The notes: generated by a model from the sequence alone, not told the origin. DNA of 64,000 bases from Neoechinorhynchus agilis (GCA_051530055.1 CM121343.1:156389-220388); one strand, 5' to 3'; shown: positions 1-38,779, numbered from the stretch's first letter. Translations and numbers: made by a program.

Positions 1-418
1 GACAATCATTTTGTAGCCTTGACTCTCTTTTTCTACCTTGTTGGAATCTATTGAACTCGGACGACCACGGTATTGTTTCACGCTCTTGGCGATTGTACTG
101 TCTTGTTTCCCGCCAGTAATTTCGATATCTTTTATAATTTCGGTTGTGTGATGGCGGTCGATAATTAGAATTTCGATTGGCTCTCCATTGAAGTTTATAA
201 AAACTACTTTCATTATCTTGGCGTCGCCGGCTAACATTTTGTGAGTGCCGTGTTAAGTGATCGCCTCTACGCTCGAAAGCTGGCATTTGATTTCGGTCTC
301 TGTTGCGTGGTTGGTGATAGTTTGTTGACTGTCGATTAGTTTCGATTCGATTTGAACGTGACCAAGACTGTTTTGATCTCTTGAAGATTGGTGAGTGATC
401 ACTGATTCGCCGTTGCAT
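1..418 (-). CDS. Arg/Asn/Gln-rich disordered protein, 5' part only (runs off the left edge); paralog of the gene that seeded the 3.8-13.2 kb satellite; probably ends in a FoP/UBM-like LDKQLDDYM motif
   Basis: Manual translation: ATG at 418, preceded by an in-frame TAA, is open to base 1 (MQRRISDHSPIFKRSKQSWSR...RETRQYNRQERETIPWSSEFNRFQQGRKRESRLQNDC). Bases 1-210 are nearly identical to 13006-13225. It is absent from the ORF track because the stop lies outside the window. Confidence 0.55.
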   Translation of the reverse strand, partial: MQRRISDHSPIFKRSKQSWSRSNRIETNRQSTNYHQPRNRDRNQMPAFERRGDHLTRHSQNVSRRRQDNESSFYKLQWRANRNSNYRPPSHNRNYKRYRNYWRETRQYNRQERETIPWSSEFNRFQQGRKRESRLQNDC

Positions 419-1471
419 CTCTCTTTAAGTTGTAAAATATCGCAATTGTTATCGATAGACGTTATATTCGAAGGAAGGAGATACGATCGTGGGTTTGTTC
501 GAACTGTTAATAAATAGTAAACCGAAGCTGTTGATAAACTTATTTGTTAGTGTTAGGCTCGCTTCTCACGTTACCACGTGATCATTTCTATTGTTAGCTG
601 CCTAATAAATATGCCTTTTAATTGCTGTTAATTAGAGAACATCATAATATTTATAGAGTTTTACGAGACCGATAATTTTTACTTTGATATTACAAGCGAT
701 TGACTTGTTTGACTATCTGATAAATTTTTGCTGGCAGCGCTCCCAAGCCAAAAGCGTATAGTCCTCATGCCATAGATGTTTTTAGGAGTGCCAATACCTT
801 GAAGTAATGGAAATTTACTTAAAAGGAGGACAAATGAAATCAGCAATCGATGTTCGTTAAAGATGAGAAAATCGATACCTAAAGCTCTATAGGTACGTTA
901 AAAATCCAGTTTCATTAGATTGGGGTCCGAACATATCGGAAAAGTTGACAATATAATTAAAGTTCGATCGTAACTATTTTATCGTCACGTTTCCTGTAGA
1001 AAAATTAGCCGGAAAGGATGAATAGAACGCCAAGCGACAAATCTTCAACTGAAGCTGTCCGTGCAAGTTACCAGCTTAGCAAGGCAGTGGATAAATGTCG
1101 CAAGTTCTTAAACCATTCGTGAGAGAACTCATGTTTTAAAGCCATGATTAGCTTTAGAGCGTTAATCAATTTACACGCTACACTTTGTCGACTAATGAGT
1201 CGTTTTTGCATAATTTTGGAATCTTATTCCGTGGCGGTTAGTATTTGTTACTGATTTATTGAAACCTTTGCTTTGTAGCCAGCCAAATTAAAGTCACATC
1301 CAAAACTGCAATGACCAATATATTCGCAGTCGCAAACACATAGCGAAAAGTTCACCAAAGCGATTCTCCACCATTTCAAAAGACATCAAATTATGTTTCA
1401 TCGCAGAAATTCTTAACCGTGTTAGCAACATTCTATTTATTAAGTGTATAATTCTAACAAAAAGGTTATAT

Positions 1472-2480
1472 TCAGTTTTCATGTTCCCGTATAAGCCTCT
1501 TCACAAAACTTTCTCCTGCAGGATCTCTTCCTTTCCCGAATACTCCTTTGAAAAGGAATTCCTTGTTCCTAATCCTCATGAAAACGTTTCTAATCTTGAA
1601 ATGTTGTACGTCCCATTTCATATATTTTGGTTCGCTAATTCCAATAATTATATCATCGGTCTCAGGGTACTCTTCGACGTCTTCACCGCTCAGAGAATCT
1701 GCCGAATCAATTGTTATCCTTTCACTTTTATCAATTTCTACTTTTTCAATACTTTCTTCACTTATATCACCAATGTCACTGTCTTCTATCTTGTTTTGCA
1801 TTGAATCTTCTAAAGACAAGTCACTACTATTTTGATTCATCGAGTCTCCAACACGAGTCCTGGCCTCCATCCTTCCTCTAGTTAAAGTTTCTATCTCGTT
1901 AGATCCATCGATATCACACGTATCGATTGAAGAGACGCTTACAAGGTCTTCCTCCATATCCTCTAACATTCTTCTATTTGAAATTAGTACCTCATTCATT
2001 TCATTGATATTAGACGAATCGATTGAAGATATGCTTATAGCGTCGTCATCTTTGCTAACTTCATTATTTGAACCAAATCTTTTAAATGGAGCAATTCTTT
2101 GCAGCACTTCATGATCTAAGCAAATTAGAGTTTGTTACAATTGTTAAGAGTTCAAGCCGAACCTACCCGCTGGCCCACCAAAAGTTCCAGCCTTGGTCAA
2201 CAAATCAATCCATTTCTGGCGTAATATTAGCAAAACTTTAAAATGATAAATCTAAATTAACATACCTCCTTCAATTCCGCAATTTTGCCTGCTTCAATAC
2301 CTCTCCTCGAGAATATCGGTTCTAGCCGTTTACCAACTTCCCGTATCGCCCCATAATATTGATTTCTCTGCGGAAATATAAATTTCTTATTAGATCAATA
2401 AAGATTTCTTTTACCGTTGTAGCTGATCTTCGACTGGTCGCAAAATGAATTGGTCTTTCACATCCCCTAGTTCTTCCCAT
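1472..2480 (-). CDS. GTF2A1: Divergent TFIIA large subunit (alpha/beta precursor)-like protein, 286 aa; complement(join(1472..2115,2167..2215,2266..2367,2415..2480))
   Basis: Three GT-AG introns (47, 50, 51 nt) join in frame to the 211-aa acidic ORF. N-terminal QYYGAIREVGKRLEPIFSRGGIEAGKIAELKEKWIDLL fits the TFIIA-alpha helical pattern (Y..I..V.....IF...G.....L.ELK..W...L). The middle is acidic. C-terminal ETDDIIIG...HFKIRNVFMRIRNKEFLFKGVFG fits the TFIIA-beta strand pattern (DTENVVVC...KFHLKDGIMNLNGRDYIFSKAIG). Alignment by eye. Confidence 0.62.
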
Positions 2481-3781
2481 TATAAGATTTTATCCTCTTT
2501 GCTGAGCTTCCGGGATATTTTGTGGGTATCACAGATACTATTTTTGAGTGGGTTTATCGATGTATATTAATGTTTTTGGGAAACCTTTTCGAACACAATA
2601 TTTGTTGCCATCACAGAATATTGATGATCCTTAGCGTTTCTTCAAAATATGTTATTCAAAGACTATTTTTTAGCACAAAAGCTTTTCTGTTAACCTTTTA
2701 TTTAATATGAAGTTTGCGTATTTTAAATGGGAAATTTAATAAAATCAGCCCCATTGCAGGTTCGGCAATGAACTACCCGTCGGCTCTGATCAACAGAAAA
2801 TGTTATTTATGTAATTTATCACTGGTTACACAATAGGAGAAGAGTCCAAAAAATCGAGATCTCCAATCAAAATAAACCGATTGATGTCGTTTTATTAAAA
2901 TTTAAATTGTCTACGTTAGCCAAATGTTCGTAGCGGACGTCTACCGATTTTCAACTGTTTAGCTAATTCTACCCCGATGTTTGATTGCGCGAGATTTTCT
3001 TTAATAAATGGTAAAATACATTCCGATCTCTCCCAATTGAAAAAATATAAACTGAAAAAATAATATGAAGTTCATAAGGTCAACCACGTAGAGCACTTAA
3101 TACTTCTTTGATCGTCAAATTTTATCTTATTGAATTAAAAGTTGGAGAATTCTAGTAAAGGACGTCTTTTTCAAAAATTTAAATACTGCAACAGTTTTGT
3201 CTCATTTAAAAAATGAAAATACATATTAAAGTAGCCAATTAAATTGCAACATTTACAGATATTGATGTTGTGCGAATAGAAACATTTTTCGCACAATCTC
3301 CAATTCTGCAACTTTAAACTCATGGCAGAATAAGTTATTTCCGGTAAAAGGAAACAAAATTATGAATACAGAAAATACTGAAGATCACGTTTCCGGAAGC
3401 ATCAAATATGGAAAATAAATTTTCTATTCGACATTCAACTCAATTATTTAGATCGAAACAATTATTTTACTCAACGCTTGATTTCGACCGATCCACGAAA
3501 CAGCGATTTCTTAACAGTCTGGGCTTTTTGCTTTCCAATTTAATAAAGACAATGCAATCGAAATTTAGAAGATCATTTTTTAGTACTTCAATAGGCATTA
3601 AGAATTCTTTGCCATATTCAGGGTTTGTGATCGGATATCATTTTTGTTCACGATGCTGATATTCTAATTTAAATTTAACAACCTTCCACAATCAACCATC
3701 GTTATTTTATGACTTTTATTAGAAAAAGTCTAAACCCCATGCTGACATATACAGCTTTGAATTATATAAAGTCTACGGTTT

Positions 3782-6700
3782 TTAATTTTTCTCCGAAGTA
3801 GCCTCTTGTGCAGGTCCCATTGCCATTCGCTCCCTTGCACATTTTGCCATGTAGTCGTCCAATTGTTTGTCGAGAAACTCCAATGTCACGCGAGGACGTT
3901 TTCTGATCGGACAATCATTTTGTGGCCGTAACTCTCTTTTTCTACCTTGATGGAATCTATTGAACTCGGACGACCACGGTCTTGTTTAATTTTGCCATGT
4001 AGTCGTCCAATTGTTTGTCGAGAAACTCCAATGTCACGCGAGGACGTTTTCTGATCGGACAATCATTTTGTGGCCGTAACTCTCTTTTTCTACCTTGATG
4101 GAATCTATTGAACTCGGACGACCACGGTCTTGTTTCATTTTGCCATGTAGTCGTCCAATTGTTTGTCGAGAAACTCCAATGTCACGCGAGGACGTTTTCT
4201 GATCGGACAATCATTTTGTGGCCGTAACTCTCTTTTTCTACCTTGCTGGAATCTATTGAACTCGGACGACCACGGTCTTGTTTCATTTTCATGTAGTCGT
4301 CCAATTGTTCGAGAAACTCCAATGTCACGCGAGGACGTTTTCTGATCGGACAATCATTTTGTGGCCGTAACTCTCTTTTTCTACCTTGATGGAATCTATT
4401 GAACTCGGACGACCACGGTCTTGTTTCATTTTGCCATGTAGTCGTCCAATTGTTTGTCGAGAAACTCCAATGTCACGCGAGGACGTTTTCTGATCGGACA
4501 ATCATTTTGTGGCCGTAACTCTCTTTTTCTACCTTGATGGAATCTATTGAACTCGGACGACCACGGTCTTGTTTCATTTTGCCATGTAGTCGTCCAATTG
4601 TTTGTCGAGAAACTCCAATGTCACGCGAGGACGTTTTCTGATCGGACAATCATTTTGTGGCCGTAACTCTCTTTTTCTACCTTGATGGAATCTATTGAAC
4701 TCGGACGACCACGGTCTTGTTTCATTTTGCCATGTAGTCGTCCAATTGTTTGTCGAGAAACTCCAATGTCACGCGAGGACGTTTTCTGATCGGACAATCA
4801 TTTTGTGGCCGTAACTCTCTTTTTCTACCTTGCTGGAATCTATTGAACTCGGACGACCACGGTCTTGTTTCATTTTGCCATGTAGTCGTCCAATTGTTTG
4901 TCGAGAAACTCCAATGTCACGCGAGGACGTTTTCTGATCGGACAATCATTTTGTGCCGTAACTCTCTTTTTCTACCTTGATGAATCTATTGAACTCGGAC
5001 GACCACGGTCTTGTTTCATTTTGCCATGTAGTCGTCCAATTGTTTGTCGAGAAACTCCAATGTCACGCGAGGACGTTTTCTGATCGGACAATCATTTTGT
5101 GGCCGTAACTCTCTTTTTCTACCTTGCTGGAATCTATTCAACTCGGACGACCACGGTCTTGTTTCATTTTGCCATGTAGTCGTCCAATTGTTTGTCGAGA
5201 AACTCCAATGTCACGCGAGGACGTTTTCTGATCGGACAATCATTTTGTGGCCGTAACTCTCTTTTTCTACCTTGCTGGAATCTATTGAACTCGGACGACC
5301 ACGGTCTTGTTTCATTTTGCCATGTAGTCGTCCAATTGTTTGTCGAGAAACTCCAATGTCACGCGAGGACGTTTTCTGATCGGACAATCATTTTGTGGCC
5401 GTAACTCTCTTTTTCTACCTTGATGGAATCTATTCAACTCGGACGACCACGGTCTTGTTTCATTTTGCCATGTAGTCGTCCAATTGTTTGTCGAGAAACT
5501 CCAATGTCACGCGAGGACGTTTTCTGATCGGACAATCATTTTGTGGCCGTAACTCTCTTTTTCTACCTTGCTGGAATCTATTGAACTCGGACGACCACGG
5601 TCTTGTTTCATTTTGCCATGTAGTCGTCCAATTGTTTGTCGAGAAACTCCAATGTCACGCGAGGACGTTTTCTGATCGGACAATCATTTTGTGGCCGTAA
5701 CTCTCTTTTTCTACCTTGCTGGAATCTATTCAACTCGGACGACCACGGTCTTGTTTCATTTTGCCATGTAGTCGTCCAATTGTTTGTCGAGAAACTCCAA
5801 TGTCACGCGAGGACGTTTTCTGATCGGACAATCATTTTGTGGCCGTAACTCTCTTTTTCTACCTTGATGGAATCTATTGAACTCGGACGACCACGGTCTT
5901 GTTTCACGCTTTTGGCGATTGTACTGTCTTCTTTGTGCCGATTCACAAATATTTAATTTGGTAGCCTCTTGTGCAGGTCCCATTGCCATTCGCTCCCTTG
6001 CACATTTTGCCATGTAGTCGTCCAATTGTTTGTCGAGAAACTCCAATGTCACGCGAGGACGTTTTCTGATCGGACAATCATTTTGTGGCCGTAACTCTCT
6101 TTTTCTACCTTGATGGAATCTATTGAACTCGGACGACCACGGTCTTGTTTCATTTTGCCATGTAGTCGTCCAATTGTTTGTCGAGAAACTCCAATGTCAC
6201 GCGAGGACGTTTTCTGATCGGACAATCATTTTGTGGCCGTAACTCTCTTTTTCTACCTTGATGGAATCTATTGAACTCGGACGACCACGGTCTTGTTTCA
6301 TTTTGCCATGTAGTCGTCCAATTGTTTGTCGAGAAACTCCAATGTCACGCGAGGACGTTTTCTGATCGGACAATCATTTTGTGGCCGTAACTCTCTTTTT
6401 CTACCTTGATGGAATCTATTGAACTCGGACGACCACGGTCTTGTTTCATTTTGCCATGTAGTCGTCCAATTGTTTGTCGAGAAACTCCAATGTCACGCGA
6501 GGACGTTTTCTGATCGGACAATCATTTTGTGGCCGTAACTCTCTTTTTCTACCTTGATGGAATCTATTGAACTCGGACGACCACGGTCTTGTTTCACGTT
6601 TTGGCGATTGTACTGTCTTCTTTGTGCCGATTCACAATATTTAATTTGGTAGCCTCTGTGCAGGTCCCATTGCCATTCGCTCCCTTGACATTTTGCCATG

Positions 6701-9700
6701 TAGTCGTCCAATTGTTTGTCGAGAAACTCCAATGTCACGCGAGGACGTTTTCTGATCGGACAATCATTTTGTGGCCGTAACTCTCTTTTTCTACCTTGCT
6801 GGAATCTATTCAACTCGGACGACCACGGTCTTGTTTCATTTTGCCATGTAGTCGTCCAATTGTTTGTCGAGAAACTCCAATGTCACGCGAGGACGTTTTC
6901 TGATCGGACAATCATTTTGTGGCCGTAACTCTCTTTTTCTACCTTGATGGAATCTATTCAACTCGGACGACCACGGTCTTGTTTCATTTTGCCATGTAGT
7001 CGTCCAATTGTTTGTCGAGAAACTCCAATGTCACGCGAGGACGTTTTCTGATCGGACAATCATTTTGTGGCCGTAACTCTCTTTTTCTACCTTGATGGAA
7101 TCTATTGAACTCGGACGACCACGGTCTTGTTTCATTTTGCCATGTAGTCGTCCAATTGTTTGTCGAGAAACTCCAATGTCACGCGAGGACGTTTTCTGAT
7201 CGGACAATCATTTTGTGGCCGTAACTCTCTTTTTCTACCTTGCTGGAATCTATTCAACTCGGACGACCACGGTCTTGTTTCATTTTGCCATGTAGTCGTC
7301 CAATTGTTTGTCGAGAAACTCCAATGTCACGCGAGGACGTTTTCTGATCGGACAATCATTTTGTGGCCGTAACTCTCTTTTTCTACCTTGATGGAATCTA
7401 TTGAACTCGGACGACCACGGTCTTGTTTCACGCTTTTGGCGATTGTACTGTCTTCTTTGTGCCGATTCACCAATATTTAATTTGGTAGCCTCTTGTGCAG
7501 GTCCCATTGCCATTCGCTCCCTTGCACATTTTGCCATGTAGTCGTCCAATTGTTTGTCGAGAAACTCCAATGTCACGCGAGGACGTTTTCTGATCGGACA
7601 ATCATTTTGTGGCCGTAACTCTCTTTTTCTACCTTGATGGAATCTATTCAACTCGGACGACCACGGTCTTGTTTCATTTTGCCATGTAGTCGTCCAATTG
7701 TTTGTCGAGAAACTCCAATGTCACGCGAGGACGTTTTCTGATCGGACAATCATTTTGTGGCCGTAACTCTCTTTTTCTACCTTGCTGGAATCTATTGAAC
7801 TCGGACGACCACGGTCTTGTTTCATTTTGCCATGTAGTCGTCCAATTGTTTGTCGAGAAACTCCAATGTCACGAGACGTTTTCTGATCGGACAATCATTT
7901 TTGGCCGTAACTCTCTTTTTCTACCTTGCTGGAATCTATTGAACTCGGACGACCACGGTCTTGTTTCATTTTGCCATGTAGTCGTCCAATTGTTTGTCGA
8001 GAAACTCCAATGTCACGCGAGGACGTTTTCTGATCGGACAATCATTTTGTGGCCGTAACTCTCTTTTTCTACCTTGCTGGAATCTATTCAACTCGGACGA
8101 CCACGGTCTTGTTTCATTTTGCCATGTAGTCGTCCAATTGTTTGTCGAGAAACTCCAATGTCACGCGAGGACGTTTTCTGATCGGACAATCATTTTGTGG
8201 CCGTAACTCTCTTTTTCTACCTTGATGGAATCTATTGAACTCGGACGACCACGGTCTTGTTTCACGCTTTTGGCGATTGTACTGTCTTCTTTGTGCCGAT
8301 TCACAAATATTTAATTTGGTAGCCTCTTGTGCAGGTCCCATTGCCATTCGCTCCCTTGCACATTTTGCCATGTAGTCGTCCAATTGTTTGTCGAGAAACT
8401 CCAATGTCACGCGAGGACGTTTTCTGATCGGACAATCATTTTGTGGCCGTAACTCTCTTTTTCTACCTTGATGGAATCTATTCAACTCGGACGACCACGG
8501 TCTTGTTTCATTTTGCCATGTAGTCGTCCAATTGTTTGTCGAGAAACTCCAATGTCACGCGAGGACGTTTTCTGATCGGACAATCATTTTGTGGCCGTAA
8601 CTCTCTTTTTCTACCTTGCTGGAATCTATTCAACTCGGACGACCACGGTCTTGTTTCATTTTGCCATGTAGTCGTCCAATTGTTTGTCGAGAAACTCCAA
8701 TGTCACGCGAGGACGTTTTCTGATCGGACAATCATTTTGTGGCCGTAACTCTCTTTTTCTACCTTGCTGGAATCTATTCAACTCGGACGACCACGGTCTT
8801 GTTTCATTTTGCCATGTAGTCGTCCAATTGTTTGTCGAGAAACTCCAATGTCACGCGAGGACGTTTTCTGATCGGACAATCATTTTGTGGCCGTAACTCT
8901 CTTTTTCTACCTTGCTGGAATCTATTGAACTCGGACGACCACGGTCTTGTTTCACGCTTTTGGCGATTGTACTGTCTTCTTTGTGCCGATTCACCAATAT
9001 TTAATTTGGTAGCCTCGTGTGCAGGTCCCATTGCCATTCGCTCCCTTGCACATTTTGCCATGTAGTCGTCCAATTGTTTGTCGAGAAACTCCAATGTCAC
9101 GCGAGGACGTTTTCTGATCGGACAATCATTTTGTGGCCGTAACTCTCTTTTCTACCTTGCTGGAATCTATTCAACTCGGACGACCACGGTCTTGTTTCAT
9201 TTTGCCATGTAGTCGTCCAATTGTTTGTCGAGAAACTCCAATGTCACGCGAGGACGTTTTCTGATCGGACAATCATTTTGTGGCCGTAACTCTCTTTTTC
9301 TACCTTGCTGGAATCTATTGAACTCGGACGACCACGGTCTTGTTTCACGCTTTTGCGATTGTACTGTCTTCTTGTGCCGATTCACAATATTTAATTTGGT
9401 AGCCTCTGTGCAGGTCCCATTGCCATTCGCTCCCTTGCACATTTTGCCATGTAGTCGTCCAATTGTTTGTCGAGAAACTCCAATGTCACGCGAGGACGTT
9501 TTCTGATCGGACAATCATTTTGTGGCCGTAACTCTCTTTTCTACCTTGCTGGAATCTATTCAACTCGGACGACCACGGTCTTGTTTCATTTTGCCATGTA
9601 GTCGTCCAATTGTTTGTCGAGAAACTCCAATGTCACGCGAGGACGTTTTCTGATCGGACAATCATTTTGTGGCCGTAACTCTCTTTTTCTACCTTGCTGG

Positions 9701-12700
9701 AATCTATTGAACTCGGACGACCACGGTCTTGTTTCATTTTGCCATGTAGTCGTCCAATTGTTTGTCGAGAAACTCCAATGTCACGCGAGGACGTTTTCTG
9801 ATCGGACAATCATTTTGTGGCCGTAACTCTCTTTTTCTACCTTGCTGGAATCTATTCAACTCGGACGACCACGGTCTTGTTTCATTTTGCCATGTAGTCG
9901 TCCAATTGTTTGTCGAGAAACTCCAATGTCACGCGAGGACGTTTTCTGATCGGACAATCATTTTGTGGCCGTAACTCTCTTTTTCTACCTTGATGGAATC
10001 TATTGAACTCGGACGACCACGGTCTTGTTTCATTTTGCCATGTAGTCGTCCAATTGTTTGTCGAGAAACTCCAATGTCACGCGAGGACGTTTTCTGATCG
10101 GACAATCATTTTGTGGCCGTATCTCTTTTTCTACCTTGCTGGAATCTATTGAACTCGGACGACCACGGTCTTGTTTCATTTTGCCATGTAGTCGTCCAAT
10201 TGTTTGTCGAGAAACTCCAATGTCACGCGAGGACGTTTTCTGATCGGACAATCATTTTGTGGCCGTAACCTCTTTTTCTACCTTGCTGGAATCTATTCAA
10301 CTCGGACGACCACGGTCTTGTTTCATTTTGCCATGTAGTCGTCCAATTGTTTGTCGAGAAACTCCAATGTCACGCGAGGACGTTTTCTGATCGGACAATC
10401 ATTTTGTGGCCGTAACTCTCTTTTTCTACCTTGCTGGAATCTATTCAACTCGGACGACCACGGTCTTGTTTCATTTTGCCATGTAGTCGTCCAATTGTTT
10501 GTCGAGAAACTCCAATGTCACGCGAGGACGTTTTCTGATCGGACAATCATTTTGTGGCCGTAACTCTCTTTTTCTACCTTGCTGGAATCTATTGAACTCG
10601 GACGACCACGGTCTTGTTTCATTTTGCCATGTAGTCGTCCAATTGTTTGTCGAGAAACTCCAATGTCACGCGAGGACGTTTTCTGATCGGACAATCATTT
10701 TGTGGCCGTAACTCTCTTTTTCTACCTTGCTGGAATCTATTCAACTCGGACGACCACGGTCTTGTTTCATTTTGCCATGTAGTCGTCCAATTGTTTGTCG
10801 AGAAACTCCAATGTCACGCGAGGACGTTTTCTGATCGGACAATCATTTTGTGGCCGTAACTCTCTTTTTCTACCTTGCTGGAATCTATTCAACTCGGACG
10901 ACCACGGTCTTGTTTCATTTTGCCATGTAGTCGTCCAATTGTTTGTCGAGAAACTCCAATGTCACGCGAGGACGTTTTCTGATCGGACAATCATTTTGTG
11001 GCCGTAACTCTCTTTTTCTACCTTGCTGGAATCTATTGAACTCGGACGACCACGGTCTTGTTTCACGCTTTTGGCGATTGTACTGTCTTCTTTGTGCCGA
11101 TTCACCAATATTTAATTTGGTAGCCTCGTGTGCAGGTCCCATTGCCATTCGCTCCCTTGCACATTTTGCCATGTAGTCGTCCAATTGTTTGTCGAGAAAC
11201 TCCAATGTCACGCGAGGACGTTTTCTGATCGGACAATCATTTTGTGGCCGTAACTCTCTTTTTCTACCTTGCTGGAATCTATTCAACTCGGACGACCACG
11301 GTCTTGTTTCATTTTGCCATGTAGTCGTCCAATTGTTTGTCGAGAAACTCCAATGTCACGCGAGGACGTTTTCTGATCGGACAATCATTTTGTGGCCGTA
11401 ACTCTCTTTTTCTACCTTGCTGGAATCTATTGAACTCGGACGACCACGGTCTTGTTTCATTTTGCCATGTAGTCGTCCAATTGTTTGTCGAGAAACTCCA
11501 ATGTCACGCGAGGACGTTTTCTGATCGGACAATCATTTTGTGGCCGTAACTCTCTTTTTCTACCTTGCTGGAATCTATTCAACTCGGACGACCACGGTCT
11601 TGTTTCATTTTGCCATGTAGTCGTCCAATTGTTTGTCGAGAAACTCCAATGTCACGCGAGGACGTTTTCTGATCGGACAATCATTTTGTGGCCGTAACTC
11701 TCTTTTTCTACCTTGCTGGAATCTATTGAACTCGGACGACCACGGTCTTGTTTCACGCTTTTGGCGATTGTACTGTCTTCTTTGTGCCGATTCACCAATA
11801 TTTAATTTGGTAGCCTCGTGTGCAGGTCCCATTGCCATTCGCTCCCTTGCACATTTTGCCATGTAGTCGTCCAATTGTTTGTCGAGAAACTCCAATGTCA
11901 CGCGAGGACGTTTTCTGATCGGACAATCATTTTGTGGCCGTAACTCTCTTTTTCTACCTTGCTGGAATCTATTCAACTCGGACGACCACGGTCTTGTTTC
12001 ATTTTGCCATGTAGTCGTCCAATTGTTTGTCGAGAAACTCCAATGTCACGCGAGGACGTTTTCTGATCGGACAATCATTTTGTGGCCGTAACTCTCTTTT
12101 TCTACCTTGCTGGAATCTATTCAACTCGGACGACCACGGTCTTGTTTCATTTTGCCATGTAGTCGTCCAATTGTTTGTCGAGAAACTCCAATGTCACGCG
12201 AGGACGTTTTCTGATCGGACAATCATTTTGTGGCCGTAACTCTCTTTTTCTACCTTGCTGGAATCTATTCAACTCGGACGACCACGGTCTTGTTTCATTT
12301 TGCCATGTAGTCGTCCAATTGTTTGTCGAGAAACTCCAATGTCACGCGAGGACGTTTTCTGATCGGACAATCATTTTGTGGCCGTAACTCTCTTTTTCTA
12401 CCTTGATGGAATCTATTGAACTCGGACGACCACGGTCTTGTTTCACGCTTTTGGCGATTGTACTGTCTTCTTTGTGCCGATTCACCAATATTTAATTTGG
12501 TAGCCTCTTGTGCAGGTCCCATTGCCATTCGCTCCCTTGCACATTTTGCCATGTAGTCGTCCAATTGTTTGTCGAGAAACTCCAATGTCACGCGAGGACG
12601 TTTTCTGATCGGACAATCATTTTGTGGCCGTAACTCTCTTTTTCTACCTTGCTGGAATCTATTCAACTCGGACGACCACGGTCTTGTTTCATTTTGCCAT

Positions 12701-13238
12701 GTAGTCGTCCAATTGTTTGTCGAGAAACTCCAATGTCACGCGAGGACGTTTTCTGATCGGACAATCATTTTGTGGCCGTAACTCTCTTTTTCTACCTTGA
12801 TGGAATCTATTGAACTCGGACGACCACGGTCTTGTTTCACGCTTTTGGCGATTGTACTGTCTTCTCTGTGCCGTTTCACCAATATTTAATTTGGTAGCCT
12901 GGTGTGCAGGTCCCATTGCCATTCGCTCCCTTGCACATTTTGCCATGTAGTCGTCCAATTGTTTGTCGAGAAACTCCAATGTCACGCGAGGACGTTTTCT
13001 GACCGGACAATCATTTTGTGGCCTTGACTCTCTTTTTCTACCTTGTTGGAATCTATTGAACTCGGACGACCACGGTCTTGTTTCACGCTCTTGGCGATTG
13101 TACTGTCTTGTTTCCCGCCAGTAATTTCGATATCTTTTATAATTTCGGTTGTGTGATGGCGGTCGATAATTAGAATTTCGATTGGCTCTCCATTGAGGTT
13201 TCTAAAAACTACATTCATTATCTTGCTGTCGTTTCGGC
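3782..13238 (-). pseudogene. 5'-truncated paralog of the gene at 1-418, internally expanded into a satellite
   Basis: Homology to the 1-418 copy stops at about 13225-13238 next to LINE sequence. This copy has TAG where the other has TAT (TTT TAG vs TTT TAT). The native 3' end ...LDDYMAKCARERMAMGPAQEATSEKN-TAA has its stop at 3782-3784. Confidence 0.75.
3800..13090. repeat. Tandem satellite: about 56 copies of a 148-bp core, 10 of which carry a 98-bp insert (246-bp units)
   Basis: Counted directly. Inserts start near 5907, 6596, 7430, 8264, 8954, 9347, 11065, 11755, 12445 and 12839. Cores differ mainly at two SNPs (ttgatgg/ttgctgg and attgaac/attcaac). Confidence 0.97.
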
Positions 13239-13239
13239 T

Positions 13240-14225
13240 CTTTCCTCCGAATCAATCCGCATTTGGAGGATTGGACGGTTGGGAAGAAGGAGCGGAGGTA
13301 GAGATTTGTGCGAGGAACTGAAGGATGGAAAATGTTGGGGCGACGCGAGTGTTGTAAGTGTGTGCAAAAGGAGAAATTTGTGGTAGAAATTGAAGAGGAG
13401 GAAGAGAATCAAGGCGTTTTTCGTGTTTGTGAAAGATTAGAGGAAGGTCAGGAGTTCGGTGCAAAAGATTAGAGCGCATCTCTTGTGAAATGTATTAAGT
13501 TTTTTGAATAGATAAGAAGAACAATTGCAGAAGGTTTAATATGCGCGTAGGTGATCGTTGGCAGGATAGCGGACATTTAGAAGTACTTAAGAACTTTGGA
13601 TGATAATCTAATTTAAGGAATTGGATGCGTTTAAGAAGATAGAGCTTAATGGACCATTTGTGCAACAGGATTGATGCGTGCTTGTCCCACTTCAGATTTT
13701 TCTGAAAATAAAGACCAAGGATACGAACAGAGGAGACACGATTGATAGGAAATAGAAGAAGCGGCTGATTGGAAGGGCTACTTGAGATTGAGGCGACGAT
13801 TTAGAAGCACTTGGTAAAGTTAGGGGTTAGACATTTAGAGGAACAAAATGCTTGAACGTGAGAATCTCGTTAGAAGTAATTGAGCCGTTGCATGCGTAAT
13901 GATTGTAAGATCATCTCAGCATACAAGAAGTATTTAGAATAAGAAGATGGAATAAGATCGTTCAGGGAAATGTTGAAAAGAATGGGGAGAGAACAGCCCT
14001 TTGGGGAACTCCCTTGTTGATAGCTAAGGTGTTCGAGACGATGCTACCTATTTCGATAAATTGTAATCTAAACCATTTGATTTGCTGGGTGGCAAGACCA
14101 AATTTAGAGCATGTATAAAGGAGAAGATTGTGATCGATGGAATCAAAATCTTTATGAATGTAGATTTGGATGAGTTGAGAGATGAACAAAGGTTTTGCGT
14201 CGAGGTTATGAAGAGGAATTCGACA
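13240..14225 (-). mobile_element. Degenerate non-LTR retrotransposon (CR1/L2/Jockey-like), RT 3' half
   Basis: RT motifs KDFDSIDHNLLL and KGVPQRAVLSP, similar to the element at 22.9-25.6 kb. Stops and frameshifts follow. Confidence 0.75.
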
Positions 14226-14229
14226 AGAC

Positions 14230-15500
14230 TGACGTCCTCTGTACCGAAAATAGGAAATTGCATCATGGTATCCCGATCGAAATACGGAAAGCGTTGGGCA
14301 GTTTTGGTATCCAAGTGTTGACAAATCTATATCGAAGTAATCACAAATCGGGAAAATGCCCGAAGCTTTCCGATCTACGAAAAGGACATATTGAACAATG
14401 CAGTAACAATGGGGGCATAAAGCTTATGGGTCACACAATGAAACTATATGAAAGGATTCTAAACAGTAGACTGAGAGAAGAGATCCGCATCGAAAAACAT
14501 CAGAGAGGTTTTATGCCAGGGCGGAGTACAACAGAAACGATCTTTCTAATCAGACAATTGTACGAGAGGTACAATGAAAAACAGAAGCCGCTATACAGTG
14601 CATTCGTGGACCTCGAGAAAGCTTATGATACAGTGCCGAGAGATCTAATATGGACACGAAGGATCCTGTACTTGTGTCAGATGCAGTGTTGGAGAGACAA
14701 ACGATTTTGAGGTTACAGTTGGATTGCATCATGGATCAGCCCTCAGTCCGTTCCTATTCGTCACGATCATGGATGTGTTGGGTTCTAAGCAAATCGTCCG
14801 AAAGCCTCCATGGACACTATTGGTCGCTGATGTCTTGATGGTGACAGCTGAAACACGTGAAAGGTCTCAGCGAAGTCTAGAAGGGTAGCGTGAGGCATTG
14901 GAAGCCACCGGTCTTAAGGTAAAAAGGTTGAAGACAATATGCATGGGACCGGAAGCGTTAAAATTAGAAGGTGTGGATTTGACGATGAGAAGAACAGTGA
15001 AATATAAAGGCAGCGAAGTAAATATGGCAAATTCCTCCGAACCCGAAATAACTGCTCATATACAAAGGGAGTGGCTCAATTGGAGGAAGATCTCTAGTGT
15101 ATTATGCAACAAAAAGATCTCACCAAAACTGAAAGGGCGGGTGTTCGAGACCGTGGTGCGGCCAGCCATGTTATATAGCGCAGAAACTTGGACGACCAAG
15201 CAAAACGACCTCAGAAGATTAGAAACGCACGAGACGAGGATGGTGAGATGGGCAGCAGGGTGCACTCTCAAGGATAAGCAAAGAAATGTGGACATCAGGG
15301 AGCTGTTCGGCACTTGCCGCTGTTCAGAGTTGATCGTCCAAAGAAGGTTACGCTGGCACGATAAAGCTTCGAAGTGCGAAGCAGATCACATACTGCGTAG
15401 CACGGAGAAAATGGAAATAACGGGAAATCGCCGACGAGGAAGGCCGAGGAAACGATAGGTAGATTGCATCAAAGAGGATAAGTTGGTTGTCGAGGGAACT
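14230..15500 (+). mobile_element. Degenerate RTE-clade LINE (RT and C-terminal domain)
   Basis: GIKLMGHTMKLYERIL, QRGFMPGRSTTETIF, FVDLEKAYDTVPR, VVRPAMLYSAETW, RRLRWH and GNRRRGRPRKR are typical RTE motifs. The frame is broken. Confidence 0.9.
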
Positions 15501-19846: not shown

Positions 19847-21108
19847 ATGTACCATCTACGGGCTTTTGCGGCCATCATTGCTATGGTCTTGATTAGTAAT
19901 ACATTCGCTGCTTTTTATCCGTACCCTTATGGTTATAAAAGGTAAACATTAGAAATTGAACCACGAGCAAAGTATGCTTATGATTTTTGTAGATTTTACA
20001 AACAAGGATATGGTGCTGGAGGAGGATTTTATGCAAAAGGTTACGGAATGCGTGGAGGTTCTATTCAAGGTGGAATCATTGATCAAGGTGGCATGTATGC
20101 TCGCGGGGGCATGTTAGGAGGCGCTAAAGTATATGGAGGAATCGGAATGGCGGAGGGAGCCGGAATTTTAGGCCGTTCTAAATTAGCCGGTGTTGGTGGG
20201 ATTGTTGGTGGACGTCAAGTAGTCGGCGGCGGAGGAGGCATTATTGGAGGAGGAGGAATCTATGGGCGTTCTGGAATCATTAGTGGTGCAGGCTTATATG
20301 GAGGCCGTGGAATATACGGCGCAAAATTATATGGAGGCCGTGGAATATACGGCGCAGGATTGTATGGAGGCCGTGGAATCTACGGCGCAGGATTATATGG
20401 AGGCCGTGGAATATACGGCGCAGGATTGTATGGAGGCCGTGGAATATACGGCGCAGGATTATATGGAGGCCGTGGAATATACGGCGCAGGATTGTATGGA
20501 GGCCGTGGAATATACGGCGCAGGATTGTATGGAGGCCGTGGAATCTACGGCGCAGGATTGTATGGAGGCCGTGGAATATACGGCGCAGGATTGTATGGAG
20601 GCCGTGGAATCTACGGGGCTGGAATGTATGGAGGCCGTGGAATCTACGGCGCAGGATTGTATGGAGGCCGTGGAATCTACGGGGCTGGAATGTATGGAGG
20701 CCGTGGAATCTACGGGGCTGGAATGTATGGAGGCCGTGGAATCTACGGGGGTGTCATAGGCGGCGGGCGTTTTGGTGGATACGGGAAATATGGTTACCAC
20801 CGACATGCAGCTTGTAGAAGATGGTAATATTTTTGCTAATTGGCAACCAAACCGCTAATGATTACTTTTAGGAAGTTGATTTCCCCCAGTTTGGGATACG
20901 GTGTAGTAAGCATATATGGTAGACCATGTGTAAGATTAAAGGAACTATACAAATATCTCAATAATAATTGTAACATTTAGGCACGACCAATCTATCGACC
21001 ATGGGTCGGAGGAATGGTAATAATATCGCTTAATTTAAATTTCTTTTAATAATGCAATTTATTTAGATGAGGCCATGGGGTGGCGTGCCGTATGGCCATA
21101 ACTACTGA
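19847..21108 (+). CDS. Secreted Gly/Tyr-rich structural repeat protein, 353 aa; join(19847..19941,19993..20823,20872..20929,20981..21016,21067..21108)
   Basis: Signal-peptide-like N-terminus MYHLRAFAAIIAMVLISNTFA. Four GT-AG introns (51, 48, 51, 50 nt) keep frame to TGA at 21106-21108. The protein has 14 x GAG(L/M)YGGRGIY repeats and RPW/YG-rich terminal exons. Confidence 0.8.
20285..20746 (+). repeat. Coding minisatellite, 33 bp x 14
   Basis: 462 bp = 14 units. Variation is mostly synonymous (tta/ttg, ata/atc, gca/gct). Confidence 0.95.
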
Positions 21109-21451: not shown

Positions 21452-22870
21452 AATTCACTGATTTATTTCTGATATTTCACGTCTGATAATTCTGAAATTT
21501 CCCCAAGGTTTGACAACTAAAACACAAGTGTTATCCTGTAGACTAGATATTGCCGGGCAATGGGTGGGTCAAAACTCTGTTCTTGGACTCATTGTCGATT
21601 CGAAACCTCTAAGCTAGAGCACCACTGTCTTCTCAATGGCAATTTTAAACGGATGCTGGCTTTATTACCTTCCATTGGTTGAACTAAGCAGCCTATTTCA
21701 ATGGCTTCCATTATAAAACGATTTCGTAAATATGGTTGTACGCTTATCACACATTCGCGCCATTAAAATCAATTTGATGTCCACATTTCACCGCATGATT
21801 TGATAAGGCTGAGAAAGCATCATAAAGTCCACATTCATATCTGTGCTATGAAAACATTTTGCAGATTTCCCGTTTGGTATGTCTCACACATTTGAATGGG
21901 CAGTCTTTGCAGTGGACGGCAAATGCCACTTCATCGTATTTTGGCTTATTTTTCAATATACCTGCAAAGTTGCCACCCTATTAGTATACAAAATGATCGT
22001 CTTGTCCAGGTTACGCAAATCCCGTCTTAGGTTCGATTGAATTTCATTATCCACAAATTTTATCCGTATATATTTTGGTTTATCATTCTGAGTACCTGTC
22101 ATGATTCTTTTCTCGTGTCTATTTGCGGTGTTTCTGGCTTTGTGGAAAGATCTTCGCCGATTCGAGATAGTCACTTGCTTTCAGAGCTTGAGTAATCAAA
22201 CGTATTTCAGCTTGCCGTAACCTGTAAGTAGAGCGTATTTTGTGCACTATCAAAAACAGGGACACTACTGCCGATATCTTATATGACTCCGGAGTGAAAC
22301 GAGAACAGAATCATTACATGTACTGCGATTGATTCTATTGCTTTCATCACCGAAAAATACATATATATGAACAACTTCTCTACAAAAACCCAAATATATA
22401 GACGTCCACTGCAAAGACTGCCCATTCAAATGTGTGAGACATACCAAACGGGAAATCTGCAAAATGTTTTCATAGCACAGATATGAATGTGGACTTTATG
22501 ATGCTTTCTCAGCCTTATCAAATCATGCGGTGAATTGTGGACATCAAATTGATTTTAATGGCGCGAATGTGTGATAAACGTACAACCATATTTACGAAAT
22601 CGTTTTATAATGGAAGCCATCGAAATAGGCTGCTTAGTTCAACCAATGGAGGGCAATAAAGCCAGCATCAGTTTAAAATTGCCATTGAGAAGACAGTGGT
22701 ACTCCAGCTTAAAGGTTTCGAATTGACAATGAGTCCAGGAACAGAGTTTTGACCCACACATTGCCCGACAATATCTAGTCTACAGGATAACGCTTGTGTT
22801 TTAGATGGCAAACCTTGGGGAAATGTCGGAATTATCCGACGTGAAATATCAGAAATAAATCAGTGAATTG
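21452..22870 (-). mobile_element. Penelope-like element remnant with about 467-bp inverted arms (21452-21918 / 22403-22870)
   Basis: The arms are reverse complements (roughly 90-95% by eye) and encode a decayed GIY-YIG C-terminal half (HCKDCP...FSALSNHAVNCGHQIDFN...MEAIEI). The spacer encodes the PLE linker KPKYIRIKFVDNEIQSNLRRDL. Confidence 0.75.
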
Positions 22871-25620
22871 AAATCGAGGAGGGGAAAGTACGGCGCCTTG
22901 GGGGACTCCTTTAAATATGGGCAGAGAAGAGGAGCAAGAAGTTCCACATTGGATATATTGTTTGCGGTTGGAGAGGAAAGAGTAAATCCAAGCGAGTTGC
23001 CAGGTTGGGAGGCCGAAGGAAGCACATGATTGGAGGAGAAGGGAGTGATCTACCGACTCGAACGCTCTGGAAATATCCAGTTGCACGAGACGGACGGTTG
23101 ATTCTGGATTAGAATCTAAGCTGCGACCAAGGAGGGCACCAGAACAAGAGTAATTGGGACGGAAAGCGAATTGCGAAGGGGATATGTTTTTGAGGAAGAA
23201 GGCAAGTAGGCGGGTTTTAAAACATTTTTCTAAGATTTTAGAGAAAGGTGAGAGGATAGAGACGGGACGAAAGGATGTGGGGGAAATCGGCTTATCGTTT
23301 TTGGGTAGGGGGACGACACGGTCTTCCTTGAGACACAATGGGAAAGAGCTCAGTAGAAAGCTAAGGTTCGTTATGTGCGTTAGAGGATCGATAAGTTCCG
23401 GGATGATGAAACGAATTGCCCAATTTGGGATAGTCGAATTAGGGGAAGAATGGTGGGGCAGCCGTTTAAGGATCTCTAGGATTTCGAAAGGGGAAACTAA
23501 CGAAGGGCATGTATGAATGGGCGAGTCGGAAAGTGAGAAGGGAGCTTGGGACAATGGATGGGAGGTTTGGGGAGGACAGAGGTTTTTATCCATGGAGTTA
23601 AGGATTGAGAGGAGATCAGATTTGGGGAGAGATGCGAAGCGGGTGGATCTACCAAGACCAGTGACATTTTTTATTTCACGCCACCAGCTTCGATTGGGAA
23701 CGGACGAGAGACGAGATGAGAGGAATAATTTGCGATCTGTACGGATGCGTTTGGTCAGTGTGGAGTGGAGGGAGGGGTAAGCGGGATTGCCTGACCGGAA
23801 AGCTTTGGTGACCTGCATTTGAAAGGTTTTTAGAAAAGGCGAGAACCGTGGAGGGTCGCGGTTCGAGATTCGTATTGTTTTGCGAGGAATGGAGGTCTTC
23901 ATCGCAGATTCTATTAGATATAACAAAGAGCCCATTGCAATCGAGGGGTCGGTGCCAAAGATGGTAGAGCGGTTTTGCGTGATAAGAGAATTGACACATA
24001 CAGCAAAGGATTGGGTATGATGATCACGTTTATCCCAGACAACGTAGGGGTCGGAAAAGGAACGTTTTTGAGGTGATGAGGGGGAGAGAAGGATGGAGCA
24101 ATGGTCAGACGAAGAACGAGTTGGGAAAGATGAGAAAGTGAGGACGGGATCGGCAGTTTGTTAAAATCGCCCAATATGATGAAGTGATTTGAGGAAATGG
24201 AAAGTAGGTCAGTAAATAGGTGGTCTATTTGTTGAAGTGTGTTGGGGATGTTTGAGGAAGGAGGGCGATAAAGGCCAGCGGTAGAGATCTCACGTTGGCC
24301 ATTGCGGAGGGCGAGATGAAGTTGGATGTGAAGTCATTCAAGATCGTCGGAGATGAAAAGGCAGGGTGAAGAGCAATGGTAAGGGAGAGAGGCGCGGATA
24401 AAGATCGATATTCCTCCCCCGTTTCGGAAGTCCCTTGTGAGGTGAAAAGCTTGAAAGTTTGGAAGGAAGGAAGATAATTTGCTATGGGGTGAGAGTCATG
24501 TTTCCGTAATTACAAGGATGTAGGCGTTGCAAGAAGAGGCCACTATATAGAGCTCATCCAGTTTGGGGAGGAGGCTGCGGATGTTAGAATAAAAGATTAT
24601 TGGAAAGGGATGTTTAGAAGGGACATGAGGGGTGGACACTGACGGAGAGGGTTGAAGCTGCGCAGAGAGAGAAGGGATGGGAGTTGGCCGATGGGGTAGT
24701 TCGTAAGGGATTCGTGGGTGGACATTGTAGTGAGGAGTGATTTGAGTGTAGGGACCATAAGGGGGAACTGCGCATGCGGGATGAAGTCGGGGGGCAAGAG
24801 GATATTGAGAGTTGAAGAGGTGGTCGTAAGAGGTGAGGTAGTGTGAGCGTACAAGGTATTTTTCGCTTCTGAGGGGCGAAGCGAAAATTTCCAGATTTGG
24901 TAGGTTGCAGATTAGTGGTTTTAGGCAGATGAGAGATGAGTGGAGGCAGGGATGAGAGGGGTTTAGGATGAGTTAATTTACGAGGCGAGGGATGCTTAAC
25001 GTAGTCGTTGAAGGATGGTAGGGGTGTGTGCTTTTTACTAGAAAATCGAGGTACAGTAGAGAAGGTGGTATGTTTTGATGGGGCTAACGTTGAAACGTAA
25101 TCGTAGAAGGATGGAAGGGGTTTATGGTTTTTTCTAGCAGTACGGGGTGCTAGAGAGGAGGTGGAGGATTTAGATGAAGCCTAGGATGAAGGGGGGTTCG
25201 GTTTTAATCGTGTAGCAGAGTGAGACTTAGAGTGCAGGGACGAGGGAAGGGTGGTATGATAGATGATAGGAGCGGAATTAAGGAGGGGAAAAGATTGTTG
25301 AAGAGAAGTCGAATTTGAGTGTGGAGAGGAGTCTTGGAGGGCGCCGACAGCAAAGGGTGGGTGGACAGTATTTAAAGAGTGAAGCGAGGGAGAAGAGGAG
25401 GTTTGGGGTGGGGAAACTGAAGATGGAAGGGGTTTGGGTTTGGGAGTGGTTAGTGTTTGAGTACTTATTGGGAAGGGGGGGGGAACCGGAGAACACGGTT
25501 TGAGCAAGGCGGTACAGGGTATCGTTGGCCCGTGCAAAACGGCGTGGCAAATTGTGTACAATACGCAATCCAATAAATTCGGGTTGTACTTATTAGCTAC
25601 GGCGATCAATATACAGCTTC
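22870..25620 (-). mobile_element. Near-full-length degenerate CR1/L2/Jockey-like LINE (ORF1 remnant, APE endonuclease, RT to motif B)
   Basis: APE motifs NIRSLLPKLDEL, VITET*L, GLYRPP and ILGDFNK. RT motifs FRPVSILSPFSKILEK, QLDISRAFESVDH and KGVPQGAVLSP. The RT breaks off into the Penelope arm at about 22870. Confidence 0.9.
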
Positions 25621-26835: not shown

Positions 26836-28525
26836 TTAGTTCCCATGGCGATTGGCAGATTGATGATTATGTTTGACATCTATTGATGTGTTTTCTTCAA
26901 TATCTTTGTCATAACTCTGATGTTGATTACTTCTGAAAGATTGAGAAACCGTGGACAGAGCTTCCTCAATAGTTCTACTTGCATTTAAATTTTGAGGACG
27001 AGGACGGTGAGTATCGACACAGTCAACACCAAGTGCGATTTCTTCGTAGGTGACTCCATAAGAGCCAGGAGAAATTCTCACTACTGTATGTAGCGGAACG
27101 GGAATATACGGCGTTAATTCCGGCGCGATTCCTCGGAAATATCCAATCAGGCACCTCGCTACGGCCTGATGGCATATCACAAGAACACTTTCCATTCGTT
27201 CTATGGCTAAAATAACGGGTTCCAGCCGTGCAACGAGGTCCTGGTAAGATTCACCCTGTGGATATCGGTAATAGTATTTGTCATTGTCACGTCGTAAAAA
27301 CTCGTCCGGATATTTGCTGGCTATTTCATAGTAGGTGAGCCCATCGCATAATCCGGCGGAGATTTCATCGAGAGCACCCCAGTGCTGCTTGTGTGCATCG
27401 ATTTTAGCCGCCGTTTGGATTGTTCGTCGATATGTACTCGTGAATACAACAGTATGCGACGAGGCGTGCTCGTAGAAATATTCAGATAGTCTCGATGCGA
27501 ATTGCTTTCCTCGGTTGGTTAGCTGACTATCCCCGCCGATTCGACATTGGGTATTGAAATGCGATTCGCCATGTCGCACTATATAAACTACAGGATTTGG
27601 GAGTACCTTTAAATTCATCAAGTAATAAACAACACGACTGGGGACTCGTCCTTGAAGTTTGTTAACAACAAACTTTTGACCAATATTTATAACTTTTATA
27701 AAACTTCCATCATGAGCGGGGCACAAGGGCTCATAATCGTGTTTAAAGTAGTTGATGCGAACTTGCATGTCATCAAAACTAAGGCCTTGCCCTCCTTTAG
27801 CTTGAGCGGATGTTGGATCCGTAAAAATATGTGGACTATCACAAACTATTTCAACGAAGAAAAGTTTGAAACCTTCCCGTTCAGCACACTCTTTGATTCT
27901 CTGTCGTCGTTCGCGACGACTATTTGTAGCATCTATAATCGCAACTTCACCTTCATCTTCAATAGATCCTCTTGGACAATTGCATGATGAATCGGCGTTT
28001 GTTTCCAATAAATCAGCATGGCCACTTTTGAGCCATTCGCATACATCAGAAAGTGCATGATCCAAGCATACATCGAGCATCCGTTCAATTTTGTCGCGAT
28101 GAGCAAGATCGAACACGACGTCTCCGCTGTCTGATACCAAAGTTGCTGAGCTCTCATTTTAAGTTCCCAACAACAAAATGGAAGCAAAGCAATAAAGAAA
28201 TATCACTCTCTTTCATTTGAATACACGATCCTCGCCGACTGCATTTGATATGTTCGTCCATGCCAATTTCATGCTGATCGAAATTCTCATGCGATGAATC
28301 AGAAATCGCGGTTGTCTTGCGCCGGCATGTAAATTGCCGTCGATACTCACCAACATTGAACGTTTTTGTACGGATACCTATCCAATTCAAGTAGCTACAT
28401 ACCTTGCGGGATAAGAATGTCTTCGCTGTGCCAGGCAAACCGACCATTGCAACAACCGTCCGGGTATTTACCAGTTTTTCACAACCTTTCTTTGATAACA
28501 ATGGAACCGTCGATGTAGTCAACAT
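26836..28525 (-). CDS. PFKFB: 6-phosphofructo-2-kinase/fructose-2,6-bisphosphatase; probably one short intron (candidate 28146-28206, giving 542 aa)
   Basis: [40 protein letters not shown] and CHQAV. The two ORF-track pieces are joined in frame by a GT..CAG intron. An alternative phase-1 donor exists at 28224. Confidence 0.9.
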
Positions 28526-35481: not shown

Positions 35482-35553
35482 GGCTCAGTGGTCTAGTGGT
35501 ATGATTCTCGCTTTGGGTGCGAGAGGTCCCGGGTTCAATTCCCGGCTGAGCCC
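35482..35553 (+). tRNA. trnP-UGG: tRNA-Pro(UGG)
   Basis: Acceptor stem GGCTCAG/CTGAGCC, A-box TGGTCTAGTGG, anticodon arm CTCGC-TTTGGGT-GCGAG, B-box GGTTCAATTCC. Confidence 0.97.
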
Positions 35554-35567
35554 AGCAACAGCGCTTG

Positions 35568-35957
35568 GGGCCGCAAAGGTCAACGGTGCGCCGAGATTTC
35601 ACATGATTTTTTTAAACGTTTTATAAACCTCATCATTAGTTTGTTCTTCTTTTTCTGGTCGCTGTTGGGGACTTTTGCTTTGACTTGTCCCGAACCCAGA
35701 CCTGATGCCGACCCCAAGCCCGGATAAATGAAGAGAGTTGGTGACAGGAAGGGCATCCAGCCGGGCCGCAAAGGTCAACGGTGCGCCGAGATTTCACATG
35801 ATTTTTTTAAACGTTTTATAAACCTCATCATTAGTTTGTTCTTCTTTTTCTGGTCGCTGTTGGGGACTTTTGCTTTGACTTGTCCCGAACCCAGACCTGA
35901 TGCCGACCCCAAGCCCGGATAAATGAAGAGAGTTGGCGACAGGAAGGGCATCCAGCC
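35568..35957 (+). repeat. 195-bp tandem duplication containing an RTE 5'-UTR with a twister-ribozyme-like motif
   Basis: Units 35568-35762 and 35763-35957 are nearly identical. Each contains GCCGACCCCAAGCCCGGATAAATGAAGAGAGTTGG. Confidence 0.9.
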
Positions 35958-38190: not shown

Positions 38191-38779
38191 GTTTCTGCCT
38201 TGCCAAATTAGCGAAGATTTAGAAATGGACGAACAATCACAGGAAGTTGGCCGGAGGTTTACAAGATCTGATCACAAAGATGGAATCTGATTTGCGATGA
38301 ACCTGAAATTGGGACTGTGGAGAGAAGGTGAACCCTAGGCAATTCCTCGCTTTTTAGACGGTCTCACTCAGATATTGCTTTCTCAGTTTTTATTGTAAAT
38401 ATCATCACAACTTTAATTTAAACTGTAAAGATATCAAAGCACCGTACTTCAAGATTGATTGTTAGTTCTCAACATAACTCATTCGTACTTCGATTTGATA
38501 CCTCCAAGCAACGTGCTTCCATTCGCTTCGAAGATGAGAAACTAAGAAGTCTCCTAATGCTTCCACTCGCTTCTTATGACTTTTATTAATATTCCCGGCT
38601 TGACAACGAGCTTCTTCAAAGACTTGTTGCACTGGTGAATATATCTCAAGGATGACATTCAATTCACGATACAATCCATGCATCGAATTCATTTCCATTC
38701 ACCGGAACTTTGATTTGACCGACGTCGAATTGCTCCGGGTATTGAAGCAGATTGAGGTCCTCGATTGACTCTTATCCAT

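Follow-up and report, generated by a model that had tools for sequence, protein, structure and literature searches.

What a 9.2-kb tandem array is doing between the two halves of a protein-coding gene is the question raised by a 64,000-nucleotide stretch of the Neoechinorhynchus agilis genome (assembly GCA_051530055.1, scaffold CM121343.1; hereafter the window, whose position 1 corresponds to record position ~156,389). The array lies at ~160.2–169.5 kb (160,228–169,473), near the start of the 7.8-Mb scaffold, and interrupts a gene here called gene B, whose intact paralog, gene A, occupies the left end of the window. Based on the collective evidence from this analysis, we consider it likely that we are looking at a young neutral tandem array, which unequal exchange has enlarged inside a paralog that is no longer a working gene. 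The initial annotation had counted about 56 copies, over ~9.3 kb, of a segment that closes the coding sequence of an Arg-rich gene. The count is borne out by the 15-mer anchor GTAGTCGTCCAATTG, which occurs 56 times (spacings of 148 bp in 37 cases, 246 bp in eight, 242 bp in two and 144–147 bp in eight), and by the period-148 blocks that Tandem Repeats Finder places from 3840 to 13085, with 97–100% identity, scores up to 4015 and composite periods of 292–296, 394 and 444. That annotation proved right in each detail that could be checked, and only its census had to be refined: beside the native first unit there are 45 short units (148 bp, some 144–147 bp), whereas 10 units are long, with 246 or 242 bp.

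The two unit classes are related by a single event. The long unit has 246 bp, or 82 codons, and keeps the reading frame. In the short unit, 98 bp have been lost between TG microhomologies, and a TGA is created directly after ...TLEFLDKQLDDYMAK (...DDYMAK), both of these points having been read correctly at the outset (junction sequences: short unit, GACTACATGGCAAAATGAAACAAGACCGTGG; long unit, GGCAAAATGTGCAAGGGAGCG). All 45 short units share one common junction, GGCAAAATG followed by AAACAAG, and the 148-bp unit is a deletion derivative of single origin. Stops are present in all three sense frames of every short unit, and the array is without coding capacity.

With all units aligned, mean substitution divergence is 0.9% within the short class, within the long class and between both. 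Two single-nucleotide polymorphisms (SNPs) and a few 1–4-bp deletions make up the common differences from unit to unit; the deletions affect 10 units and fall, in some of them, inside short homopolymer runs. Both SNPs and several long-unit subtypes are graded and ordered along the array, with long units spaced every 4–5 units across the right two-thirds and the 13 units at the left all short. A strict higher-order repeat was sought in the array, and what was found is a loose long-unit pattern and one exact 690-bp duplicate, accompanied by other exact multi-unit repeats (runs of 520–670 bp at larger offsets). Exact copies of multi-unit blocks, among units that are ~99% alike, point to repeated unequal exchange, with the register shifted by one unit or by several at a time.

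Native sequence on both sides places the array inside gene B, as had been proposed. At the left edge the minus-strand translation reads ...RKRPRVTLEFLDKQLDDYMAKCARERMAMGPAQEATSEKN and stops at the TAA, at 3782–3784; at the other side the native upstream coding sequence continues beyond the array, from 13085 to about 13231. Homology to gene A and to the paralog P0001 stops at ~13232, with the start codon and the first ~64 codons gone, and no copy of this missing 5' part exists elsewhere within the window. Given the loss of ~64 codons at the rearrangement, together with the in-frame TAG that replaces a tyrosine codon of the paralogs, gene B is a 5'-truncated pseudogene. The annotated gene model at this place (P0003, 12689–13218) bypasses the TAG by an 'intron' of 11 nt, too short to be plausible, and ends at the first short-unit TGA. 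Right of the breakpoint, the sequence finds only one weak match among the fetched loci. The retroelement fragment adjoining the breakpoint has a counterpart farther off in the window, a second non-LTR-type (lacking long terminal repeats) fragment with an RVT_1 match at 22832–23935 on the minus strand.

The 3' side of gene B is in good order. Window positions 1–3900 (minus strand) are collinear with positions 10674–14188 of a paralogous locus, L002, that carries P0001 (two units), the acidic gene (175/286 aa) and P0002. From this collinearity, gene B is the counterpart of P0001, the gene with two units, and has kept its native 3' context. A segment made up of a two-unit gene, the 286-aa gene and a one-unit gene is present on two scaffolds, and its CM121343.1 counterparts of the two outer genes are gene B and gene A. 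The acidic gene is paired with a gene of the family at three loci (window 1472–2480 on the minus strand; L002 12643–13278; locus L007 8500–9508), so that the two duplicate as a unit. Gene A extends ~620 bp past the left window edge and contains three in-frame 246-bp units, 96% alike; its start codon is found at 418, where it had been placed initially, and its C-terminus, SEKN-TAA, matches the end of gene B exactly. In comparison to L002, where the P0002 locus is the collinear one, the region upstream of gene A contains an insertion of ~560 bp (window 653–1214).

Features of gene A, gene B and the tandem array in the window.
Feature	Position	Strand	Remarks
Gene A, 5' part (intact paralog, P0007, 349 aa)	1–585	minus	family ATG at 418–416; annotated short 5' exon at ~585
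Gene for 286-aa acidic Ser/Asp/Glu-rich protein	1472–2480	minus	no Pfam match; immediately upstream of FoP-like gene
Gene B, native C-terminal tail CARERMAMGPAQEATSEKN	3782–3839	minus	TAA stop at 3782–3784; 3' flank collinear with P0001 locus
Tandem array with native first unit	3840–13085	minus	56 head-to-tail units
Array proper	3840–12935	minus	55 units: 45 short, 10 long
Run of 13 consecutive short units, no long ones	3840–5756	minus	3' end of array; T variant of second common SNP enriched
Example short unit, 148 bp	4427–4574	minus	reads ...TLEFLDKQLDDYMAK, then TGA across junction with next unit
Higher-order block of 690 bp (1 long and 3 short units)	10743–12122	minus	two exact consecutive copies
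Example long unit, 246 bp	11606–11851	minus	82 codons, in frame; 97% identical to gene A units 2 and 3
Gene B, native first unit with what is left of the coding sequence upstream	12936–13231	minus	about codon ~65 of gene A onward
In-frame TAG	13202–13204	minus	replaces TAT (Tyr) of paralogs
Sequence in place of gene B 5' end (rearrangement breakpoint)	13232–13853	plus	73% identity to L002 7980–8530 (upstream of P0001), inverted orientation
Degraded reverse-transcriptase open reading frames	14195–15458	plus	non-LTR-type retroelement fragment (RVT_1); adjoins breakpoint

The seed of the array is older than the array. The family has at least 10 copies, cluster members included (gene A, gene B, P0001, P0002, P0004, P0005, P0006, P0008, P0009 and the unannotated L005:4814–5144), most of them on scaffold CM121341.1 at 9.6–11.1 Mb. 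Two 82-codon units, joined at the identical point (..ATKLN..), are present in each of P0001, P0004 and P0009; P0006 has two with the second disrupted, and P0002 and P0008 have one, such that unit numbers of 1, 2, 3 and 56 occur across the family. The two units of P0001 share 86% identity; in comparison across genes, first units group with first (91–96%) and second with second (87–90%), and the signatures DDYKAK and DDYMAK distinguish the first from the second. Since the paralogs hold 1–3 units with the same junction and with orthology by unit position, the in-frame duplication, judged from these comparisons, predates both the divergence of the paralogs and the array.

This dating divides the original proposal, according to which an in-frame motif duplication had escalated into satellite DNA. 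That the array arose from a coding duplication stands; the duplication did not begin at this locus, and the array is at most a candidate satellite. The monomers are arranged head to tail, near-identical (56 units, ~99% alike) and non-coding by virtue of the short-unit stops in all sense frames, as those of a satellite are. As regards abundance, one 9.2-kb array is seen, in a comparison limited to six family loci (~120 kb); these six other loci contain no 148-bp unit and never more than 3 units.

The mechanism we propose extends an ordinary coding duplication by loss of constraint. The duplicated motif segment of 82 codons (246 bp) was already present in the family. A rearrangement beside retroelement debris removed the promoter of gene B together with the first ~64 codons, and gene B carries the TAG; a single 98-bp deletion at the TG microhomology gave the out-of-frame 148-bp unit. 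Unequal exchange between sister chromatids or homologs, or replication slippage, acting on the existing duplication may have raised the unit number, and drift and turnover could have spread the frame-breaking short unit to 45 of the 56 units, a spread made possible once selection had ceased to act on gene B. The array itself would have no function of its own. Several points weigh against this interpretation. The copy number rests on a hybrid assembly from pooled worms, in which the 1–4-bp indels of 10 units may be assembly errors. The lack of function is deduced from the anatomy of the array, and the amplification may have preceded the pseudogenisation of gene B or followed it. Moreover, the dominance of one deletion variant with a length of 148 bp, near that of the nucleosome core, could reflect a cause other than drift; the numerical closeness, pointed out in the initial annotation, is real and carries no evidence by itself.

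The other readings of the locus concern the RNA, the assembly, the mobility and the coding potential of the repeat. That the array has a non-coding function, producing PIWI-interacting RNAs (piRNAs), small interfering RNAs (siRNAs) or a repeat RNA that acts on the intact paralogs (82–97% identity), is unlikely. The precedent is Su(Ste) of the Drosophila Stellate system, composed of whole-gene-sized units with a transposon insert, from which antisense piRNAs are made. The resemblance lies in a gene-derived tandem array, in the retention of intact paralogs of high identity and in a host piRNA pathway; the difference is that the units here are sub-exonic, of 148–246 bp, and known from sequence alone. 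An action on paralogs would accord with the 97% identity of the array to the adjacent gene A (the long unit compared to units 2 and 3), against 82–88% to other paralogs, and with the retroelement debris and large inverted repeats of the surrounding region. N. agilis furthermore retains PIWI, ping-pong piRNAs and clustered piRNA loci, and small-RNA libraries of this species are published (PMC12256650). On the other side, the promoter region belonging to gene B is gone, the neighbouring reverse-transcriptase fragment is directed away from the array, and Rfam and tRNA scans give no match inside it. In its most specific version, which we regard as doubtful, the array might be a newborn small-RNA source whose 56-unit transcripts feed the piRNA/siRNA pathway and thereby hold down the intact paralogs with several motifs. 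If this were true, the locus would represent a conflict or dosage system like Su(Ste)/Stellate, imposed on a candidate family of mRNA-export adaptors, and a gene would have been caught in the act of becoming a regulatory satellite.

It is improbable as well that the array is wholly or partly an artefact, with fewer units or a different unit number inflated or scrambled by the hybrid assembler. The assembly was made with MaSuRCA/Flye from Illumina and Oxford Nanopore Technologies (ONT) R9.4 reads of a pool of ~50 worms, was scaffolded by Hi-C and included very little HiFi data (PMC12690905). The ten units with 1–4-bp deletions, partly in short homopolymer runs, fit with this origin, as do a long poly-C run and 99% inverted repeats elsewhere in the window that are possible assembly problems. 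However, an identical junction in 45 copies is beyond what sequencing error makes, and the order and gradation of the two SNPs and the long-unit subtypes along the array are not what scrambling would suggest. Given that the ONT reads used for assembly were filtered to at least 5 kb (PMC12690905), reads spanning 9 kb are plausible.

A transposable element that has captured a gene fragment, with internal tandem repeats and a dispersed monomer, is a very remote prospect. The truncation of gene B at its 5' end is exactly where unrelated sequence and the reverse-transcriptase fragment start, which would suit such an element, but collinearity with the P0001 locus holds over ~3.9 kb downstream, a stretch that takes in gene A and the 286-aa gene duplicated along with it; the six other family loci compared are devoid of the 148-bp unit and have no more than 3 units, and the sequence right of the breakpoint has a single weak match in the fetched loci. 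Capture of the gene fragment by a transposable element was rejected in view of the collinear 3' flank. That gene B is a working gene for many UAP56-binding-like motifs, despite long units in frame and the existence of the model P0003, is already contradicted by the sequence and given almost no credence: the TGA of the first short unit follows the second motif, the short units are closed in all sense frames, gene B lacks a start codon and 64 codons, and the model avoids the TAG only via the 11-nt intron.

The array, read as young and neutral, can be set beside several known kinds of repeat. Coding minisatellites, variable-number tandem repeats and macrosatellites, such as the mucin repeats, LPA kringle IV-2 and D4Z4/DUX4, likewise involve a coding segment amplified in tandem by unequal exchange, with unit numbers varying between paralogs or alleles. 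They differ in that here most units derive from a deletion that breaks the frame, and that the array, with a pseudogene as its host copy, encodes nothing any more. With satellites seeded by ribosomal DNA (rDNA) spacers or transposable elements, the locus shares a small internal duplication as seed, followed by homogenisation and higher-order blocks (here the exact 690-bp duplicate), and it is distinguished from them by a protein-coding exon as seed and by the single 9.2-kb array (PMC5615363). Because the seeds named in that review, on how satellites originate, are rDNA spacers and transposable elements but not coding exons (PMC5615363), an array seeded by an exon, and with every intermediate still there, is uncommon, while being mechanistically ordinary.

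The importance of the locus lies in every stage being readable in one genome, from functional paralogs of one, two and three units to a dead 56-unit copy between the halves of a gene. It offers a clean case, for teaching and for testing, of how relaxed selection and unequal exchange turn coding repeats into non-coding tandem DNA. As it stands, it exemplifies, at one locus, how coding sequence gives rise to repeat DNA; nothing points to a function, and its practical importance is modest unless the array is abundant, transcribed or a source of small RNA.

The study also flags, in an acanthocephalan, an unstudied and expanded family of CHTOP-like proteins. In the 87-codon core, the ratio of nonsynonymous to synonymous substitution rates (dN/dS, Nei-Gojobori) is 0.19–0.44 in the motif frame, and in the two other frames ~1 or higher in most comparisons (range 0.37–3.7). 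By this contrast between frames, the family is judged to be truly protein-coding and under purifying selection. An alternative open frame (MLAGDAKIMKV...) was considered as the coding frame and is ruled out by a dN/dS mostly above 1 (0.86–3.7) and the lack of a Pfam match.

The proposed resemblance of the unit to the Pfam family FoP_duplication (PF13865) stood up to the profile: with 27.0 bits (E 7e-6), the 82-aa peptide of the unit exceeds the gathering cut-off of 24.6, and five of six family proteins match at E ≤ 0.01 (best E 4.6e-10). Single-unit proteins by themselves remain below the cut-off (19.1–21.6 bits). In the AlphaFold2 model of P0002 (mean predicted local distance difference test score, pLDDT, 56), the sole confident element is a helix at residues 149–169, LEFLDKQLDDYMAKCARERMA, with pLDDT of 81–85; the rest is probably disordered, as the model suggests. 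A short acidic and hydrophobic motif of LDxxLDxY type that forms a helix in a disordered basic protein is what a UAP56-binding motif looks like, a prediction that concerns form only. Comparison of PRVTLEFLDKQLDDYMAKC to PVLTKEQLDNQLDAYMSKT, the first CHTOP motif, gives 11 identities in 19 positions and serves as a lead rather than a test. CHTOP has two closely spaced UAP56-binding motifs (PMC7744094).

Like CHTOP/FOP and the ALYREF-like adaptors, the family proteins are Arg-rich, largely disordered and end in at least one short helical motif. The differences from CHTOP are that its central Gly-Arg-rich (RGG) region has no equivalent here and that, where a CHTOP orthologue should be traceable across animals, this family, in at least 10 copies of 1–3 motifs each, has relatives in N. 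agilis only among the proteins searched, and its binding to UAP56/DDX39B is only predicted from the motif. The basic region of the family is rich in Arg, Asn, Gln and Tyr, and RGG repeats are not found in any of the family sequences. Among 5.8 billion proteins there are no homologues beyond N. agilis hypothetical proteins, and 1.84 billion representative proteins, searched with a profile, yield the family alone. Judged by these searches, the family is lineage-restricted, comprising Neoechinorhynchus-specific, Arg-rich proteins with CHTOP-like (FoP_duplication) C-terminal motifs; it cannot, on its sequence, be called a CHTOP orthologue, because the RGG region is absent and the profile search finds nothing else. 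Sequence searches of the Protein Data Bank with the unit peptide and the family profile gave chance-level matches only (E 0.1–1.5; SPT20, eosinophil cationic protein, calcium-channel alpha2/delta subunit), with no solved relative among them. The N. agilis genome paper makes no mention of FoP, CHTOP, ALYREF or UAP56 in its supplement, or of satellites and tandem repeats in its main text (PMC12690905).

Some observations on family members and their surroundings may be added. The 314-aa model of P0008 (ACOME3_002239, CM121341.1), a fusion in which a FoP-like gene with one unit continues after ...SEKNEKP into ~130 aa of unrelated C-terminal sequence, may be chimeric. Downstream of the second FoP-like gene there is a 298–306-bp tandem repeat at locus L006 (14597–15171, 1.9 copies) and at L002 (16094–17159, 3.4 copies), another small array whose copy number varies between duplicated segments. 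An 18/36/54-bp tandem repeat occupies window positions 43984–45677, with ~46 copies of the 36-mer at 70–76% matches, and each strand has open frames there; an 18-mer related to it is present three times at L002 17994–18047, downstream of the paralogous FoP-like cluster, and the repeat may belong to a repeat-protein gene travelling with the cluster.

Lastly, the remainder of the window combines ordinary genes with structural peculiarities. An open reading frame at 20048–20827 (plus strand), part of an annotated 309-aa gene, contains a 33-bp repeat in 14 copies that encodes Gly/Tyr-rich GAGLYGGRGIY repeats with no Pfam match; the protein may be structural, of the eggshell or tegument type. At 26836–28140 (minus strand), ~14 kb from the array, an exon-sized PFKFB-like open reading frame with 6-phosphofructo-2-kinase and histidine-phosphatase domains represents an ordinary housekeeping gene. 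A tRNA-Pro(TGG) gene at 35482–35553 (plus strand) is directly followed by two copies of a 195-bp direct repeat with 99% identity (35568–35957). The inverted repeats at 38189–40536 and 47260–49607 (2348 nt, 99%, 6.7 kb between the arms) enclose an uninterrupted run of 87 C (42048–42134), which may be an artefact of assembly or gap closing, and a second inverted pair lies at 46303–47269 and 55961–56928 (~0.9 kb, 98%). Such large inverted repeats could mark a foldback or palindrome, could be the ends of a large terminal-inverted-repeat element, or could result from misassembly.

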